Source of the DNA: Thalia democratica
Lineage: Eukaryota
NCBI GenBank assembly: GCA_965202585.1
Contig: OZ241832.1
Location: 51,150,001 to 51,214,000, forward strand
DNA: 64,000 bases
Reading direction: 5' to 3'
Position 1 is the stretch's first letter, and each line of letters opens with the position of its first letter. This document shows, in pieces, positions 6,291-61,078 of this stretch. The notes beneath the pieces were generated by a model, which ran no database searches, was not told where the DNA came from, and was given only the letters and a program-made list of their open reading frames with translations. The position numbers and the translations under genes were made by a program.

Positions 6291-6988
6291 TGAAATTTTG
6301 TAGTGGACAAATTTGACATATATATTATATTTATATATATATTTTATTAATTAATTTTAATCATTAAAATAACAAAATACATACATTTAACAAAAAAAAA
6401 ATGTTCTGCAGTAATTATATTTAAGTGTCAGTATTTTATTTTAGTTATGATCAATTTCGTCGATTTATCCAAGAATAATGCCAGAAAAGGTTATCAAGAA
6501 AATATTTCAAAACCTTTTAGTAAGTTTTCTTTACAATGTGTGACAAAACCAGTTTTAATTTATATCTAACTGTTTATTTAAGCACATTAAATGAGTTTCA
6601 ATTAGCACATACGATGGAATATTAAATAATATTTTGACTGCAATAACTCTAAGCACTACCAAAAAAAAACGTTTCTAAAATTTAGATTAATAATAAGTTT
6701 TTATGTTAAACAAACTAACGTGCTTTACATTTATATTTTATTTAAACTAACTGAGCATTTTACAGTGTTTTAATAGAATATAAAAATTTAATAGCATTAA
6801 TAAAAATTTGATTACAATCGATCAAGTTTAAAAATTTCAGTGCTAAACTAATTTTATCTAATTAAAAGATTATAAAAGTTTAAACGATAGAAAAAACTTG
6901 ATCAATATTTTTATTTTTTGAATATTTTTTAGGTGAAACAAAGAAAACAAAATCTGAATTTATAACAGCTTTGAAACTGAACAAGCTC

Positions 6989-8365
6989 ATGATGAAAGGT
7001 GATATAAACCCAAGCATTTACAAGCACTGTCAAGCTAAAATAACTGTTGAAAGTTCTCACTTGTTTTATACGCTGGCTAAAATCTACAAACTAGACAAAG
7101 TTGCTGAATTTTCACTGAGTTATATGGTTCGTTGTTTTCCAATGGTAGTTGAGACTCAAAACTTTTTACAGCTAGACTTTGAGATTATTGTAAAATTACT
7201 TGCAAGTTCTGAACTAGATATTCACTCGGAAGTTCAAGTATTCAATGCAATAAACCAATGGATAAATTACAATTTTAAAGAGCGTATTAAGTATGCGAAA
7301 AAACTGTTACTAAAAGTTCGTTTTACACTGTTATCTGACGCCAGTATAGATTATCTTTTAAACAGATCTTCATCATTTGCCGGAAACAGTGAATGTGTTG
7401 ACATGTTTAAAGAAATTTTAGAAGGCGAGAAAACTTTACTTCGAAATAAATCGTTGAGTTACTACACCGGAAGATATTGTAACCAAGATAAATTTAACAT
7501 GTTGATTTGTGGTGGACTTTATTTAAAATCTGCTGCTCACGTGGCAAGAGTCAAACAAATTAATGGAACAAACTTTAAGGATGTTAACGATCTTTCCTCA
7601 ATGCTAAAAGTGCGGATATGCTTCAAAGCAGCTTCTTTAAAAGGTGAAGTTTACGTGTTTAGTGGTTATGACAAAGATGAAAAAGACATAGTGTCTGTTG
7701 ACAAGTATTCACCTTCTGCTGACACGTGGAGCGAGGTGGCTGACAGGTTTGACGACCGCAAGCACTTTTGCATTTGCCCGTTCATGGACAGCATATACGT
7801 TTTTGGCGGGTACTACAAGACCATTGACGATTTCGACGTTGATGACGTTTCGGATTTCGTAACGGAGTCTTGTTTGCAGTTTAACGCGGCGGAAAGACGC
7901 TGGAAAGAAGTTTGCGGCATGGATGAAAAGAGACATTACGCCGATTGCGTGGCTTTCCAAGGAAATGTCGTTGTTGCGGGCGGAAGCGATGGTAAAGAGT
8001 TTAGTTTGAAATCAGTGCATTCGTACGATGTTTTCGCCGATAAATGGACGTCGATGCCCGACATGATCAAGCGCAGAATTTATCACAACTTAGTTGTTGT
8101 AAAAGAAAGATTGTTTGCTGTTGGAGACGGAGTTGACAACTGTGAAGTTTTTGACAACGTTGGTAAAAAGTTTGTACTTCTAAAGTCGCCGCACGACATT
8201 TTTTCTAACAGAGCTGTGTCGATTGAAAACAAAATAGTGATCGTTCAACAAATAAAACCGAATGTTATTTGTTATGATGCTAACGAAGATGAATGGTCTG
8301 AAGTTCCTTGCGATTTAACTGATAACATTATGTATTTTTCAACCGTTAAAATACCTTGGCATTAG
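6989..8365 (+). CDS. Kelch-like protein (BACK domain + Kelch beta-propeller, no BTB), single coding exon, 458 aa from the first ATG
   Basis: BACK motif FLQLDFEIIVKLLASSELDIHSEVQVFNAINQWI; Kelch repeats with GG doublets (ICGG, VFGG, VAGG) and conserved Trp (DTWSEV, RRWKEV, DKWTSM, DEWSEV). The frame is also open back to an acceptor TTTTTTAG at 6931-6932, so an upstream exon cannot be excluded. Confidence 0.9.
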   Translation: MMKGDINPSIYKHCQAKITVESSHLFYTLAKIYKLDKVAEFSLSYMVRCFPMVVETQNFLQLDFEIIVKLLASSELDIHSEVQVFNAINQWINYNFKERIKYAKKLLLKVRFTLLSDASIDYLLNRSSSFAGNSECVDMFKEILEGEKTLLRNKSLSYYTGRYCNQDKFNMLICGGLYLKSAAHVARVKQINGTNFKDVNDLSSMLKVRICFKAASLKGEVYVFSGYDKDEKDIVSVDKYSPSADTWSEVADRFDDRKHFCICPFMDSIYVFGGYYKTIDDFDVDDVSDFVTESCLQFNAAERRWKEVCGMDEKRHYADCVAFQGNVVVAGGSDGKEFSLKSVHSYDVFADKWTSMPDMIKRRIYHNLVVVKERLFAVGDGVDNCEVFDNVGKKFVLLKSPHDIFSNRAVSIENKIVIVQQIKPNVICYDANEDEWSEVPCDLTDNIMYFSTVKIPWH

Positions 8366-10339: not shown

Positions 10340-11900
10340 CTATTGAATTAGTTGATCATTTACTAAATCATCCTTTAGTTCAAACTGAAACCTTCCAAGA
10401 TGGCTTTGGTCAATAAACTTAATAGGTAGGTCTGTCCAAAGCCTACTGACTTGATAAGCTTGTAATTTATAACTATTACTGCTTTTAAATCTAGGTAAGA
10501 AAAAAATTGTTTTTGAGGACCTTGTTGAATGGCTATTTATTTTAGTTATATTTTTAAAGTAACACTTAAAATTTAGTGGTAAAAAACTACGTAAAAACTT
10601 GAACATAAAAACTACCAACTCATATTTGAATAATTTTTCAACAATTAACTTTTCTTTTGTTAATTTCAAACTTCTTACACTCTCGTTGTACTTATTATAG
10701 CGAATGCATCTGAGTGCTTTATTTAAGATTATATTGATTTCATTAACTTTTTTTTTTATTGGTTCTACCCCAGTATAAAAGACCATACCTTATATAACTC
10801 ATAAAAAGTAAATTAAAAATTAAGTATGAAGATTTTCCATTTAAAAAGTACTTTGTTTTATAAAGAACACCGATTGCCTTTAATAATTTACCTTTTACCA
10901 TTTCAATATGTTCCGCCCAACTTAAGTTATTAAATATTTTTACTCCTAAGCACTTTAATTCTTTATCATTTTTACAATTGTTTTACCTATTTTGACACAA
11001 AATCTTATGTTTTTTCAAAAAGTTGTTTTAGCTGGATGAAGTACAGTACTTCTAGTTTTACTTTAATTGATTTAAGTCTGTTTTCTTCATGCCAACTTGA
11101 TACATTTTGAAGTTCAAAACTAAGTTTGTCACTGTCTTGTAAACATGTACTTTTATTAAATGTTCTATACAGTAAAGTATCGTCTGCAAAGTTTAATACT
11201 TTTAGCTAGTAATGTTTTGTAGGTCAATAATGTGCATGGGAAATAAAAGAAGTCCTAGGACTGAACCTTGTGGTACTTCTACGTAAACTTTTTAACGTAT
11301 TGATTCATACCCACAGAAATTAATATACTGTTCCCTTTCAGTCAAGTAAGATTTAATTAACAATTGCATTTTCCCTATTACACCATAACATTCTAATTTG
11401 TTTAGCAAAATCCTTCTATCAGCACTGTCAAATGCTTTACTTAAACCAAGTTATAACGCACATACTGCTTTTCCCTTATCAAACCTGTTCAGAACATCTT
11501 CTACAAATTCAAACAAAGCCATGGTAGTAGAGTTGTATTCTCGAAAACCAAATTATGAATTATTTAAAGTAATGTTTTTAGTAAAAATGCTATATAAACG
11601 ATTGTAAATTACTTTTTCAAGTATTTTATTTAAGTTAAATAATATTGAGATAGGTCTATAGTTGCTCTGTAACTTTGTTGATCTTGATTTGAATATTGGA
11701 ATTATTTTTGCTAATTTTAAACTATTTGGATATTTACGTTCGTAATATACTTGATTAGTCAATTCACTTTAAACTTAAGACACAGGACTGTTGATATTTT
11801 AAAGAATTTTAATTGAGATATTATCATAACCATTATATTAGCCTTGTTTAAATCTAAGTTTTTATAACGTTAAAGCAAAGAACTTTTTGTGGTTTTTAGT
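10340..11900 (-). pseudogene. 5'-truncated, decayed non-LTR retrotransposon RT (L2/CR1 group)
   Basis: Minus-strand translation: YPNSLKLAKIIPIFK, NYRPISIL, KILEKVIYNRL, FGFR..ST, LSKAFD, VPQGSVLG.LLF, FADD, W.EHI..V..KL.K.IG.LYK, YG.LYWG. Several stops and frameshifts. Confidence 0.92.
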
Positions 11901-13356
11901 CAAAGCGTAAATGAAGATTATGATATCACTTTTTTGAAGTTCCAATGTTTAAAAAACTCTATTTATTAACTTTTAAATTTTATTACTACTATTGTTGTGT
12001 TACCTATGCTAATTCTTCTTTAAATATTTTTTTTTATGCCACATGAATTCATGTAACTCTAAAAAACAAACTTAAAATCTAACTTTAAAAAATATTTTTA
12101 GTAACTAAGCCACCATTAAACTTCTATACTTAGTATAAAACATATTAAAACCATTCAAATAGCAACTCAGCATAAAATCACGTCCAAAACACAAACACAC
12201 TTAGATTTGAAGCGTATATTAGCTTTCTGTCACAGCTTACTAATGAGTTTTTATCAGATTTAACCGAACAAGATTGATTTTGGCTAAGTTTTGATAAGTA
12301 TCAAAATTACGAGCTTTTTATGTCACATTTGTGTAATAAGATAGGTTAATCACGTAAAAAACAAAAATGTTATTTTTGATAAAACAAAGCTTTTAAAAGA
12401 AACCACTAAGTTTATACAAAATAAAATAGTTTATGATTGGTTAGTACTAGCTACAAATCTTTAATCCAATTTCGGATAAATTTGAAAGATTTATATATAT
12501 ATATATATAAATTGGAATTTGGTAACATTGAAAAAAATATTGACCCTTTTTCCAATCATCACTAAACTGCAAACTGAAAAAAAACTAGATTGAGTTTCAT
12601 AATGTATCATTTTTTTAAGTTTATATTGTTTTTAGTTGAAAACCATGTTTTTGTTTTTAGTACTATGCAGTACGTTTCTAAAGAAAAGTAGTGAAAATAT
12701 ATTTAAACGTTTTTAAAAAACAATGGAATTTTTTCATTTATATTTCATTAATTTATATATTGTTACGTATTTTATTTTTTTATAAAAACTGCATAATAAC
12801 GTGTCAAAAATTTTTTAAGGTTAAATTTTTTAACATTATACAGTTTGACTTTTTTTTTACGCTTTCAAGTAAACACAGCAAACGATGTTTACTTTTAAAC
12901 ATATCACTGTTTTGTAAACATATCACTGGACTTTTATGTTAACTATTCAACTTTTTTTTTAAACGAACTACTAAATTTGTTGAATTTATTAACGATTCTT
13001 GCGATAATAAAACTATAAAATATCTCTATTTCACAGAAGAAAAAATATATAGTTTTAACTTTTAAAATTAAATTTCAAAAATAAAGTTCGCTCAAAAAGC
13101 TCATCAGTGCAATAGATAAACAATTTTGGATAACATAAAAGTCAAGGAAGATAAATTTTAAATAACCATAATCTAGGTCAAAAGTTAGGAAAAAAGTTAT
13201 TATCATAAAACAAAAGTTAAAAATATTTAATTTTTCACTCTTTTGTAGATTGAGAATTTTTTTACTTGAGTGTAAGTTATTTAATACAAAAATAAGATTC
13301 TAAGAGAACAGTTTTTAAAAGTCTATGTACTATATAAACTAAAACGTGTGATATAT

Positions 13357-13447
13357 TGTGTAGTACGACTCGATAACCGAAATGGTCCTTTGTACACTAA
13401 GTCCTTAGACAAAACTTTTTGAGCGCTTTTTTTATCGTTCAATAAAC
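13357..13447 (+). repeat. SINE-like dispersed repeat copy
   Basis: GACTCGATAACCGAAA...GTACACTAAGTCCTTAGAC...TTTTGAGCGCTTTTT...TTCAATAAAC matches the copies at 26944, 37482, 40571 and 57521. Confidence 0.6.
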
Positions 13448-14569
13448 AATATATAAAGTAAAATAAACTTTAAAATTTGAGTGAATTTTAGGAGGTATAT
13501 AGTGTTTTTTAAGATATAAAGATTAAGTAAACTAATTTTTTTAAACAAGAACAATAGAAAAACTTTAAATTTATATAATGAGTCTTTACCAAACTTGTAC
13601 AGCTTTAAGAATTAAGTATAATTGGTCTACTTAAAGAGAATAATATAGGTAACTTAATCGTAAAATAGTTTGCATAAAATTTTAACATTTTTGTGTCGTT
13701 TTACATTGAAGCTTACGTGTAAAATCAGTTTTGTTTATAAATAAAATTTGTTTATAAATAAATAAAATATTTACACTTAGGCTATAAACCTAAAGTACAA
13801 AACATAGTGATCTAATTAACTACCGCGTATATTTTCTAAAGTTAACGAGGTAAATATAGTTTGTGGATCCTAATTTTTGTTTTTCTTCACATCACAGTAC
13901 TTTTCTAAAATACTTAGAGTATTAACTTGTTAACAGTTATCACACGTGTTTTTTTTTTAATAAAGCACCATTAAAATAAGGTAGTTGAACAAAAAAAACG
14001 TATGACGTATAAAAAATATTTAAAAGAAATTTAAAAACTATGATTAAACAAAACTAAAAAAAAAAACTAAATATTATTTTATTATTTCAAAACAAAATTT
14101 TAAATCATTTCAAGATATTTTTTTTTCAAACTAAAATAAATAATTTTTAGTTTTTTTTAGTTTGAATTTTTAAATGTTTAAAAAAAAAGTGGTTGTAGAT
14201 CTATTAGATAAAATAATTGTATTAAATAACAAACTAAAAATAAAAACTATTAAAACAGAAATTTAAAAACTACTAGAAATAAGTATAATTTAAAACTTAT
14301 TTTAGCCATATCTCTAAAGTTATTCATAACTTTGGAAAACAAAAAATTGAGAGCAGGTATTAATTATACCTACATATTTATTTTTTGTTCTTTTCAAACT
14401 TATTTTACTTTATATGTTGTTGCCATTTATATTAAATTTTAAGAATTTAAATTGTAAAAATTTTAATTTTCAAAATTTTAATTGTCGTGCACCCACATCG
14501 AAGTACCGTGATTTTTTAATAAATAAACAACAATTTTTTTTTTTTTTAAGTTCTAGCATTATAAAATAA

Positions 14570-15226
14570 ATGATGGACAGCAACAACTTTGAGATTCATA
14601 TAAACAGAATTAATAGAGCGCACAACCTTCATTCCAAGCTTTTAAACAAATTGACTCCGCAACTGCTGGAGAATATGAAAGATCTGAAACGAACTCTGTC
14701 CGCTTCTATCAAATACGCCCTTAACAACAATGAAATATTCAAAAAAACTTATCAAAACTGTGATATCGAACAAAAAAAGAGAATGATAAGTTATTTTTCA
14801 CAAATGTACAATAAATACAGTTATGAAAGTTTGTTTGTTAAAAAAAAAAAAGATATTATTAAGAATGTAGAATCTGTGGTCATTAGTTATAATAAAAGCG
14901 GTAAAGGAAACGATCTTATTCTGATAAAAAACTTCTTCAACCACAACTACAAAAATAAAATTCCAGTTATTGAGTTTAAAAATAATAGGTACTGTTGCAT
15001 CGATGACAAAGCCATAAAAACTTTCAGGGATTTGGACTACCAAACAATTTTAAATTACGCAATTTTTTGCAACCACTCCAGAGAAATATTGACAAAAAAT
15101 AATGCTAAAAGACTGTTAAAAGTTAGGAACTTAATATCTCACTGCAAAGCTTGTAAACTGATGGATGAAAACACCTACAACTTCTGTTTACAGGAAACAA
15201 ACGAAATAATGGATTTAAGCATTTAA
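14570..15226 (+). CDS. Intronless 218-aa protein with a predicted C-terminal HEPN-type domain (R-x4-H, RNLISH)
   Basis: Clean ATG-to-TAA ORF with an in-frame TAA immediately 5', a strong polyT-AG upstream and AATAAA at the stop. The C-terminal pattern DLDYQTILNY..FCNH...RLLKVRNLISH resembles HEPN families (DZIP3/Swt1/CXorf38-like) as recalled from memory. Confidence 0.75.
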   Translation: MMDSNNFEIHINRINRAHNLHSKLLNKLTPQLLENMKDLKRTLSASIKYALNNNEIFKKTYQNCDIEQKKRMISYFSQMYNKYSYESLFVKKKKDIIKNVESVVISYNKSGKGNDLILIKNFFNHNYKNKIPVIEFKNNRYCCIDDKAIKTFRDLDYQTILNYAIFCNHSREILTKNNAKRLLKVRNLISHCKACKLMDENTYNFCLQETNEIMDLSI

Positions 15227-17247
15227 TAAATTTGCCTTACAAGTCAAACAAAAGTCGTTCGAGTGGAATTCTGAATAAGAAAAAATCAAACGCTAGCAAA
15301 TAATGAAATTCGGTTAATTTTTTTATTTTTTTGAAGCATATGTTTTATATATGAATGTATGTTAGTTCTTTTGTTCTTTAAGTTGTCACTCCTTTTATTA
15401 TGCTGTTAATCTTTACTTTTAATAAATCGAGAGAAAATTTTAAATTAGTTGCTAAAGCTTGAATAAGTCAAGTGTAAACAAATTACATTCTTATCACACA
15501 AATGTGACGAATCAGACTCATGTTTTGACGCTTAACAAAATTTATGCAAAAGTTATCTCGTTATTTATTATTATACTGTGTGAAGAATCTAAATAAATGT
15601 ATCAAATCTTAAATAAGTTTCTGTTTAGATTTAGATATGATTTTATTAACTTTTCAAAATACACTTTAAAAAACAATAGAATACTGTTTAATAGTGTTTA
15701 AATTACTAAAAGTTTTTATGTAAAACTTTGTTTCTTTAGACTAGTGATGATTTTGTGCGCTATAAAAAGCAAGAATTATCATTTAAAGAAGAATAACATT
15801 AGTACCAGCTATATTTTACTTAGCATAACTTTAAAGACATTTTAGGTAGAGATTTCAAAGTTGTTAAACAAAAATAAGAAATGATTGTTAATACATTTTT
15901 TGATTAGATAACGGCAGACTACTGTATTCAATTGCATTTAATTGTAAATAATTTTCGCAGTCTAAAGGCATAAGCCCTAAAACTTACATAAAAATGTAAA
16001 TATAAATTATTTATATTAAACACGCTAAAAACTGTTTACTGTTTATTCTGTATATACAACCAAAAAAAAGTTAATTCAAACATTTAATAGTTTGTTTGTT
16101 GTAGAAAAGTAACTATGAGTTTATAATACATGTAACCTTTTAAACATACAGGTTTTTCTTATAACAAATAAATTAGATTTATAAGTAATTGCAGTAAATA
16201 CTTATTCAAATAAGAACATAACTGTTACAGAATTTATGTTTTTTTAAATGAGTTTATAAGATACTAAAATAGTTTATAGTTTTATTATTAGAATAGTCCA
16301 ATACTTTACCATAAAATAACTAAAAAACTCTTTTAAATTTGTGTTTTTTGAAGATTACTGCTTAACATAAGATAACAATTTTCATCAATTAAAAACTTTA
16401 CTTTTAACATATTTACTATAAAAAGTTTAATTTTAAACTTAATGTACAACTATATAATGCAAAGTTTGAAAAATATTAAACAAAACATTTTACTTATTTT
16501 CAACTTATAGTGTATATTTTACTTAAATATAGTATCTAAATGTTTTGTAATACAGCTGTAAATTGTTAAAATTGAAATAATTTCAAAGCTCGCAACTATG
16601 GTCCACCAACTTGATGTGGCAGTTATCGAGTTAAACATCGTTGAATTTGAAAAACTGTTGTAAGTTAATTAAAAAATAATTATAAAAAATAGTCATTAAA
16701 CTGTAAGCTATAACATAATTTCAGTATTTAAAAGCTTTATGTATTTTTGTTACCTTTACTGCTTATTGACCAGGAATATCACGTTTACTTACGGACACAA
16801 AACTACGTAGCTTTTTCACAAAACTCTGACGATTATTAAAGTTCGCACTCATTTCACTATTACTATAAGAATAAATCAAGTAGCAGAAGAAACTAAGTAA
16901 AAAACTAAATACATAGTATAAGCATTAAATATAAAGAATTACATATAATATTTGTGTTTTTAATGAGTTCTATAAGTTTTTTTAGCTTATCGGTTATAAA
17001 TTGTTTGACTATTATTGTTATTTCAACTTAGCTTTAAAAGTTAGTTTACTACTAAAAACAAGTATCCAATTTGTGAAGTACAAACGTGAAATTCAATAAT
17101 GCAATATTTATGTTCTAATTTTAGTGTAAAAGAATGAAATCTACTCTAAAAATTTTAACATACTATCAAGATTATAAAAGAAATTTAAAATTGTATCGAG
17201 TTATACATAAAAAAGCTTCTCTCAATTTTTAGCGCTTACTTTACGAA

Positions 17248-17337
17248 TTTAACAAAGGGTTGATCATGCCAATTCGATCATCAGACAACAATCTTTCAGT
17301 AGGCTGATCGAATTGGCATGATCAACCCTTTGTTAAA
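17248..17337. repeat. Perfect inverted repeat, 33-bp arms, 24-nt loop
   Basis: TTTAACAAAGGGTTGATCATGCCAATTCGATCA (17248-17280) and its exact reverse complement (17305-17337). Confidence 0.95.
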
Positions 17338-17766
17338 CTTGAGCTTGTCCGACGGCAAACAAAAGTCCAGGCTTCTGCTCTGCAGACTTTCGCCGATGTT
17401 TTTGTTGAAATTACGAAGTTAACATATATAGTTTAGATTGCTTTACGCTTATTTTAAAACATTATTAGTTGGATCCAAAAAACTTTCCTAACAATTTTTA
17501 AAAAGGTTTTATTTTATTTCTTAATTTAAAGGTGTTCTGAAAAACTTCTTAATATTACAGTTAAACAGATAATAAAACTCTATGAATAAGTAGAAAACCC
17601 GTTTTTTTAATAATAAGCAATATACTTTTTCAACAACTTTTAAAAAACTTCTCTAAACAAATCAAAAATAAATAAGTTCTTTTTGTTTTTATAAAAACTT
17701 TATACTGTTTAAAAATTTTAAAATAAGTCTAACTAGTTTTTAGAGTTTTAGAAAGTCATACTAAAT

Positions 17767-60700: not shown

Positions 60701-61078
60701 ATGATCGAGTACGACCTGCAGTATTTCTTCTACGTCAACGGCACGTGCGTCATCAAATCGTCGAAAGAAAGTTGCGCCGAAGCCGACGACGACGCTCGTA
60801 TAATGCAGTTCGACGACGGCGTGAGAGGAGACGATTACGTCATGAGGCAGCACGAGCTCGCTGATGACGTCATTCACGAGGAGACGAGGCTGTGTTTGGG
60901 CGACGGTGATCGGGGTGAAGGTTATTACGCGGTGAACCGGAACGCGGGCGATTTGGTTCGACTCGGTTTGAGCGACTCCATCCAGGAAGTCGTTGGAAAA
61001 TCTCACCGGAGCTTCGGCGCGTCAAAAAAACCCCTCGTCATACTACAGCTGTTTTTCGTTAAAAGTATAAAAAGCTGA
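60701..61078 (+). CDS. Hypothetical 125-aa acidic protein (or first coding exon), function unknown
   Basis: Sharp GC-rich island with strong G/C third-position bias in this frame (atc gag tac gac ctg cag...), acceptor-like TTATTTAG 19 nt upstream and in-frame TAA before the ATG. The 3' end (stop versus splice) is uncertain. Confidence 0.7.
   Translation: MIEYDLQYFFYVNGTCVIKSSKESCAEADDDARIMQFDDGVRGDDYVMRQHELADDVIHEETRLCLGDGDRGEGYYAVNRNAGDLVRLGLSDSIQEVVGKSHRSFGASKKPLVILQLFFVKSIKS

Follow-up and report, generated by a model that had tools for sequence, protein, structure and literature searches.

A HEPN domain is an up-and-down bundle of four helices with a conserved R-x4-6-H motif on its penultimate helix. 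HEPN enzymes generally act as pairs of domains, and in eukaryotes many of the domains are regarded as non-catalytic. Those of the CXorf38 type have been predicted since 2013 to be animal innate-immunity RNases; to our knowledge none of them has been tested at the bench, and we know of no CXorf38-family protein for which activity has been demonstrated. CXorf38 was defined in 2013 as a new HEPN family of the Swt1-like group and predicted to be active (Anantharaman et al., 2013, PMC3710099), a prediction that is made for this type because the R, N and H residues are kept. The same work listed the HEPN domain of Swt1 as inactive, described a Zn ribbon inserted in the HEPN domain of CXorf38 and reported fusions of CXorf38 to dsRBD, NACHT, DEATH and CARD domains in deuterostomes and cnidarians, with a role in defence against RNA viruses suggested (PMC3710099). 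In human CXorf38 the motif is 162-RNEIMH, D134 is ranked as the key acidic residue and predicted to be catalytic, a downstream helical bundle is predicted to occlude the site, and a truncated form of the protein is predicted to form a canonical HEPN dimer (bioRxiv 10.64898/2026.05.28.728550).

The gene described here lies in a 64-kb stretch of DNA (the window, by which we mean the whole of the stretch analysed) and is best explained, with a confidence somewhat above even, as a functional, lineage-restricted gene encoding a minimal and very divergent HEPN protein of the CXorf38/DUF4559 (Swt1-like) kind, predicted to cut RNA. The initial annotation of this DNA had presented it as a candidate unrecognised ribonuclease effector, which overstates the case since CXorf38 was already defined as a HEPN family in 2013 (PMC3710099); that the CXorf38 HEPN was known, by computation, leaves as new the short, intronless, core-only variant and its tie to a set of unannotated, very long proteins.

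The coding sequence is complete in a single exon at positions 14570..15226 of the plus strand, 218 amino acids plus stop as read from the ORF list and the sequence, and begins with an ATG immediately preceded by an in-frame TAA. Codon 186 (15125-15127) is AGG, encoding Arg, and codon 191 (15140-15142) is CAC, encoding His, both inside VRNLISH; the intact 218-codon frame, the Arg at 15125, the His at 15140 and the stretch KTFRDLDYQTILNYAIFCNHSREILTKNNAKRLLKVRNLISH quoted in the initial annotation were all recovered from the sequence. Such an ORF is far beyond chance, because the GC content of the window is ~25% throughout, stops are expected at ~9% per codon at this composition (giving, by our own arithmetic, a chance of ~2e-9 per start for 218 codons) and the 64 kb hold four ORFs only of at least 120 aa. 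The G+C content of the ORF is 30% and its GC3 38%, against 21-23% in the flanks. In two public DNA runs of this organism, Logan contigs span 13429-17275 with the ORF unchanged; the public runs containing this stretch are DNA only, their contigs end in repeats and their word depth is an even ~80x. The gene at 14570..15226 is real and intact.

Some other features of the window were noted in passing. A ~330-bp interspersed repeat (14165-14498), which has hundreds of genome copies (772 first-look candidates at 72-83% identity), ends ~70 bp 5' of the ATG, and a short local inverted repeat lies at 14059-14158. In the 464-aa ORF at 6971-8365 on the plus strand (listed with TTG), BACK and Kelch repeats were recognised (E 2e-21 and 6e-20), with the BTB domain absent within the ORF, which probably represents the large terminal exon of a BTB-BACK-Kelch gene; ORFs of 148 aa (10340-10786, minus strand) and 125 aa (60701-61078, plus strand) are without a Pfam match.

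A word-indexed protein search with the ORF gave no match, and among 1.8 billion representatives searched exhaustively with HMMER there were two matches only, P0001 (E 4.8e-26, 114 aa) and P0002 (E 1.8e-12, 329 aa). The cluster of P0002 includes proteins of 1583 and 1589 aa, and two more, of 1547 and 1402 aa, came from a further search; in alignment, the first ~210 residues of these long proteins (P0006, P0010, P0013 and P0014, 1402-1589 aa) span the whole ORF. A marine metatranscriptome catalogue is the source of P0002, and one of the long proteins is encoded without interruption on a JGI contig of 5.3 kb, so the long form is transcribed in marine plankton. The window's genome itself holds at least 13 multi-exon loci of the long family, on C1, C2, C5 (where one gene lies at C5:27289000-27299000), C6, C9 and C1121, in which the module is spread over at least five exons with a phase-0 intron two codons 5' of the Arg, between K and VRN. 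The ORF is homologous over its full length to an intact short paralog in the same genome, L002, and to residues 1-~210 of P0006 and P0013; homology to the long proteins and multi-exon paralogs covers all 218 residues (P0002 at E 2e-12), and the RNxxxH and LD motifs are identical. Whereas the long proteins extend for more than 1200 residues further and have the module on at least five exons, the window gene consists of one exon and ends after the core. Its N-terminus aligns with the N-termini of its homologs, its stop matches the stop position of the paralog, and a search of the window for a remnant of the downstream part of the long proteins found none, all of which bears out the earlier description of the gene as intronless and stand-alone. 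The window ORF is, as these alignments show, a short member of a previously unannotated and expanded family of ~1500-aa proteins, and this family is linked to HEPN.

As to the remainder of the long proteins, Pfam recognised no domain in any of those of 1402-1589 aa; the ~1200 residues past the HEPN module in P0006, P0010, P0013 and P0014 (L033) have neither a Pfam domain nor an ESM-Atlas neighbour, residues 380-1300 of a long protein giving no match in that atlas. A scan of metagenome contigs with the exon-5 alignment gave 253 pattern matches, none of which was confirmed. The genome (G000) also contains a more divergent subgroup of the long family (L035-L039; C1 81.99-82.28 Mb, C5 21.14 Mb and C6 36.58 Mb), with at least three loci clustered within 280 kb on C1, in which the motif reads VRNAIAHY or VRNGVAHY and two members have Glu in place of the Asp (ELEPQ, EFEPQ).

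Residue conservation was counted in a 27-row alignment (A3); a version with N-terminal exons added (A4) was misaligned and was left out. An R-x4-H pattern alone is common by chance and is meaningful here because it is conserved: within the R-N-x3-H motif, R186-N187-L-I-S-H191 (15125..15142, plus strand), R186, N187 and H191 are invariant in 18 of the 18 family sequences. The initial annotation had made its reading depend on the conservation of this Arg and His among homologs, and neither varies. The acidic residue 30 positions before the Arg, D156 (codon 15035..15037, plus strand), the counterpart of D134 in human CXorf38, is Asp in 13 of 15 sequences and Glu in the remaining 2, and aligns with the FD of L043, the genome's own DUF4559 protein; A164 is kept in 15 of 15. 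Towards the other end, F7, R13 and M36 are conserved in all five sequences that cover the N-terminal helix.

In the models described below, the protein is divided into three parts, all encoded on the plus strand. Residues 4-53 (14579..14728) form a long N-terminal helix which is the first helix of the bundle in the AF2 model and in VIA-align superpositions. Residues 54-145 (14729..15004) are a variable middle part, poorly modelled (pLDDT 38-64) and divergent between the paralogs, towards the end of which residues 133-144 are predicted to form a beta-hairpin with adjacent C142 and C143, a four-ligand pattern being absent. Residues 157-216 (15038..15217; pLDDT 74-97) make up three C-terminal helices of a HEPN-like core, and it is this segment that is matched by the Swt1-like, DZIP3-like and CXorf38 AFDB-cluster models and, in relatives, by DUF4559. 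The N-terminal ~130 residues, previously regarded as novel, do not make up a domain of their own: they are common to the N-termini of the ~1500-aa family, and in the model their first helix lies against the C-terminal helices in the same bundle.

The assignment to HEPN draws on several kinds of sequence comparison. Pfam returned no family for the window ORF up to E 10. In the relatives, DUF4559 (PF15112, curated cut-off 27 bits) matches P0014:1-200 at E 6.7e-6 and 26.2 bits (residues 5-164 on profile 119-283) and P0001 at E 3.6e-5 and 23.8 bits (profile 115-177), both just below the cut-off and both in register with the D...RNxxxH segment. HEPN_Swt1 (PF18731, cut-off 27.5 bits) and another HEPN model reach sub-threshold values of E 0.03-0.12 in relatives, PF18731 scoring 13.9 bits against P0013 (E 0.068) and 13.2 bits against P0014. 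PF18738 (HEPN_DZIP3) matched neither the ORF nor any of the 27 alignment members, and a genome search with it, in which the control was silent too, gave no match and is uninformative. A single gene of the genome clearly belongs to DUF4559, L043 (C7:28601680-28602582), an 805-aa single-exon ORF with a match of 79-83 bits: the family profile aligns with it by hhalign at E 0.029, in register at both the Asp and VRNxxxH, and by hmmsearch at 7.8 bits, a score reached by 0 of 1000 shuffles. A word-indexed protein search with the DUF4559 core of L043 gave no match. The spacing from Asp to Arg is 30 in the window ORF (D156-R186), 31 in L043 and 28 in human CXorf38 (D134-R162 according to the preprint), and by language-model features the nearest ESM-Atlas clusters are HEPN_DZIP3, DUF4559 and HEPN_Swt1 (0.93). 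No HEPN protein was among the matches of a profile search of PDB sequences, the best of which, MJ0754 at E 0.009, falls over the variable middle part and not over the motif, and was judged spurious.

Structure prediction from the single sequence was unusable (pLDDT 39). Given alignment A3, AF2 returned a model with a pTM of 0.59 in which residues 1-40 (pLDDT 78-97) and 150-218 are confident and residues 79-136 fall below a pLDDT of 50, the middle third being unreliable. When this model was compared with AFDB clusters, the first rank went to the N-terminus of an unnamed 940-aa protein and ranks 2-6 included two Swt1-like HEPN proteins, one DZIP3-like HEPN protein and one CXorf38 homolog, at E 0.5-1.1 and probabilities of 0.69-0.95, none of them significant. 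Foldseek against the PDB and Swiss-Prot AFDB gave nothing better than E 1.4, with Csm6 among the weak rows only, and over all three collections no match was significant (E >=0.4). Among 48,000 PDB representatives, the top 50 by VIA-align include the HEPN proteins and HEPN-bearing nucleases 1wwp, 2hsb, 5yep, 1ylm, 4rgp (Csm6), 7ae2 and 8vz6 (AbiF), in which the N-terminal and C-terminal helices of the model superpose on whole HEPN domains; their Z values of 6.1-7.9, like those of up to 8.1 overall, lie within the range that the tool gives for unrelated helical bundles. By shape, the best ESM Atlas match was to an unnamed cluster at TM 0.39, and a homodimer prediction scored 0.00, which counts neither for nor against pairing.

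The HEPN reading, for which several independent and individually modest lines agree, is probably correct. Both the HEPN assignment and the CXorf38/DUF4559 likeness proposed from the sequence alone are upheld by the relatives' sub-cut-off DUF4559 matches, the L043 alignment and the Swt1/DZIP3/CXorf38 neighbours. In the fold comparison that had been suggested alongside them, HEPN models are among the top AFDB-cluster matches, and no structural match is significant. We infer a HEPN fold for the window protein with good confidence, and place it in the CXorf38 branch, as a divergent sister group and not as a Pfam-level member, with confidence a shade lower.

The likeness to CXorf38/DUF4559 comprises the conserved Asp, V-R-N-x3-H ~30 residues further on, followed by a helix of acidic/aromatic pattern (MDEN..F in the window ORF, LDENF in L043). 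The differences are as follows: the window ORF is below the Pfam model and ends near profile position ~185 of 305, so that the downstream helical region of DUF4559 (profile ~180-283), retained by the long relatives (P0014 matches up to profile 283), is absent from a protein which stops 27 residues past H191; it is also free of partner domains (dsRBD, NACHT, DEATH or CARD), and no Zn ribbon could be recognised in it. L043, from the same genome, is likewise intronless and has the same core motif (FD...VRNEMMHC), but is a clear DUF4559 member with a long C-terminal extension, and its similarity to the window ORF is detectable over the ~40-residue core only. The DZIP3/hRUL138-like (PF18738) and Swt1-like (PF18731) HEPN domains are the nearest neighbours by language model and fold and have an RN-x3-H type motif in common with it, although the former gives no profile match and the latter only E 0.03-0.12, in relatives. 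Minimal prokaryotic HEPN proteins, such as the HEPN-MNT toxins (SO_3166 5yep, 7ae2), AF_0298 (2hsb) and TTHA (1wwp), consist of the HEPN bundle only and superpose on the model with Z 6.1-7.9 and rmsd 3.0-4.1 A over 93-99 residues, in the range of unrelated bundles; unlike these proteins, the window gene has a eukaryotic host, a ~90-residue insert after helix 1 and no adjacent MNT-like partner gene that could be seen.

Constraint on the gene was examined through its short paralogs. Searched in six frames, the 802-Mb genome to which the window belongs yielded L002, an intact 219-aa paralog on contig C4 (C4:55938766) with 42% identity, and a broken copy, L003 (G000:C4:55916602-55917251, minus strand), 22 kb from L002 and in the opposite orientation. 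Between the window ORF and L002, dN is 0.47 while dS is saturated (~3) and third-position identity is 45%; such a dN in the face of saturated dS indicates that the ORF has been held open, and its motif kept intact, over a long time. The most divergent part is residues 51-100, with 26% amino acid identity. The window gene and the copies on C4 lack every intron of the long paralogs and end 27 residues past the His. L003 and an independent metagenome contig, L034 (ENA ERZ27289125 k119_782856), have both lost the same 1 nt from an A-run, so that the frame shifts after ~residue 95, the downstream frame with RNxxxH being open in both; this could be a shared old lesion, could give an N-terminally shortened product or could be a homopolymer artefact in both assemblies.

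Beyond the stop codon, a non-coding 3' flank and possible 3' UTR (15358..15804, plus strand) is 68% identical to the flank of L002, compared with 49% in shuffled controls and 45% at third codon positions. It has stops in every frame and occurs at four places in the genome only, one of which (C4:55982623-55982861) is without an adjoining ORF, and an Rfam search of 13000-17500 gave no match. The flank may represent either a 3' UTR under constraint or a conserved element in its own right; recent gene conversion was rejected as the source of its conservation, the adjoining C-terminal third codon positions being just 42% identical. An origin of the ORF from a transposable element was also rejected, as the ORF and the 3' flank are present at only 3-4 genome places. 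The loss of all introns fits retroposition as the origin of the short form; inspection by eye of 15500-16400 and 13700-14300 for a poly-A tail or target duplications revealed none that was clear, and against simple retroposition the short copy keeps the 5' part of the long genes.

That same absence of all of the at least four introns which split the module in the long paralogs, in a copy which spans only the 5' part of the long genes, could be taken to mean that a long family member gave rise here to a partial copy, as a retrocopy or fragment, which is dead or dying and whose ORF is open by chance, the more so as the sister copy L003 on C4 is broken, an interspersed repeat ends ~70 bp 5' of the ATG and the runs containing the stretch are DNA only. 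We consider this very improbable: an unconstrained ORF would soon be lost in DNA of 25% GC, yet the frame is open at a dN of 0.47 although synonymous sites are saturated relative to the intact paralog, the start, the stop and the catalytic residues are conserved, and the 3' flank is conserved above the neutral level. The gene is intact, the family exists, its key residues are conserved and the ORF has been retained by selection. A retained gene might nevertheless encode a lineage-specific helical protein that is not a HEPN at all, in which RNxxxH is a structural or binding motif and the weak matches reflect how common helical bundles are; every match falls short of the curated and conventional thresholds of significance, no HEPN protein came out of the profile search of PDB sequences and the model is poor at residues 79-136. 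We regard this as quite improbable, since independent methods converge on the narrow CXorf38/DZIP3/Swt1 group and not on assorted helical proteins, and the match is in register at the Asp and RNxxxH with a close Asp-Arg spacing (30, 31 and 28).

With the fold granted, there is the further question of whether the protein is itself an enzyme. It could instead regulate the long paralogs or serve as a decoy, pairing with their HEPN modules and either activating or blocking them or completing a composite site, or it could be a plain RNA binder. The window protein is nothing beyond the module which the long proteins carry at their N-termini, HEPN enzymes generally work as domain pairs, and the inactive listing of the Swt1 HEPN exemplifies the many eukaryotic HEPN domains that are thought to be non-catalytic. 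All predicted catalytic residues have, however, been kept at synonymous saturation, and a pure decoy would not need them; we hold a non-enzymatic role to be unlikely and prefer a divergent HEPN protein of the CXorf38 kind with predicted RNA-cutting activity.

According to this preferred explanation, the long N-terminal helix and the three C-terminal helices would make up the bundle seen in the model, with the variable insert between them, and D156, R186, N187 and H191 are the predicted active-site residues. The window gene would be a short, intronless form of a module that otherwise occupies the N-terminus of a multi-exon family of ~1400-1590-aa proteins, and its product, ending just past the core, would be without the helical region found downstream both in the long proteins and in CXorf38. 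By analogy with HEPN enzymes that have been characterised, pairing of the protein with itself or with a long paralog would create a composite, metal-independent RNA-cutting site: self-pairing would yield a free-standing RNase, while pairing with the N-terminal module of a long paralog would make it a regulator. Enzyme activity, pairing and biological role are ascribed to the window protein only by such analogy. A more speculative extension, which we think rather unlikely, has two forms. In one, this core-only HEPN would be a small, constitutively active RNase that is restrained through its RNA, in keeping with the unusual conservation of the 3' flank; in the other, it would act in trans as a subunit that turns the ~1500-aa paralogs on or off through mixed HEPN dimers. 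Were either of these true, the gene would be part of a eukaryotic toxin/antitoxin-like arrangement split between separate genes.

Taken alone, the gene adds to a known superfamily one divergent member, from a single lineage. It and its intact paralog are approximately the smallest natural form of the CXorf38-type HEPN domain, and its 218 residues, free of partner domains and of the downstream region, would make it a handy subject for a first activity assay and for structure determination. As a natural variant which ends where the core ends, it could also be used to probe the proposal that the region following the core in this family is autoinhibitory.
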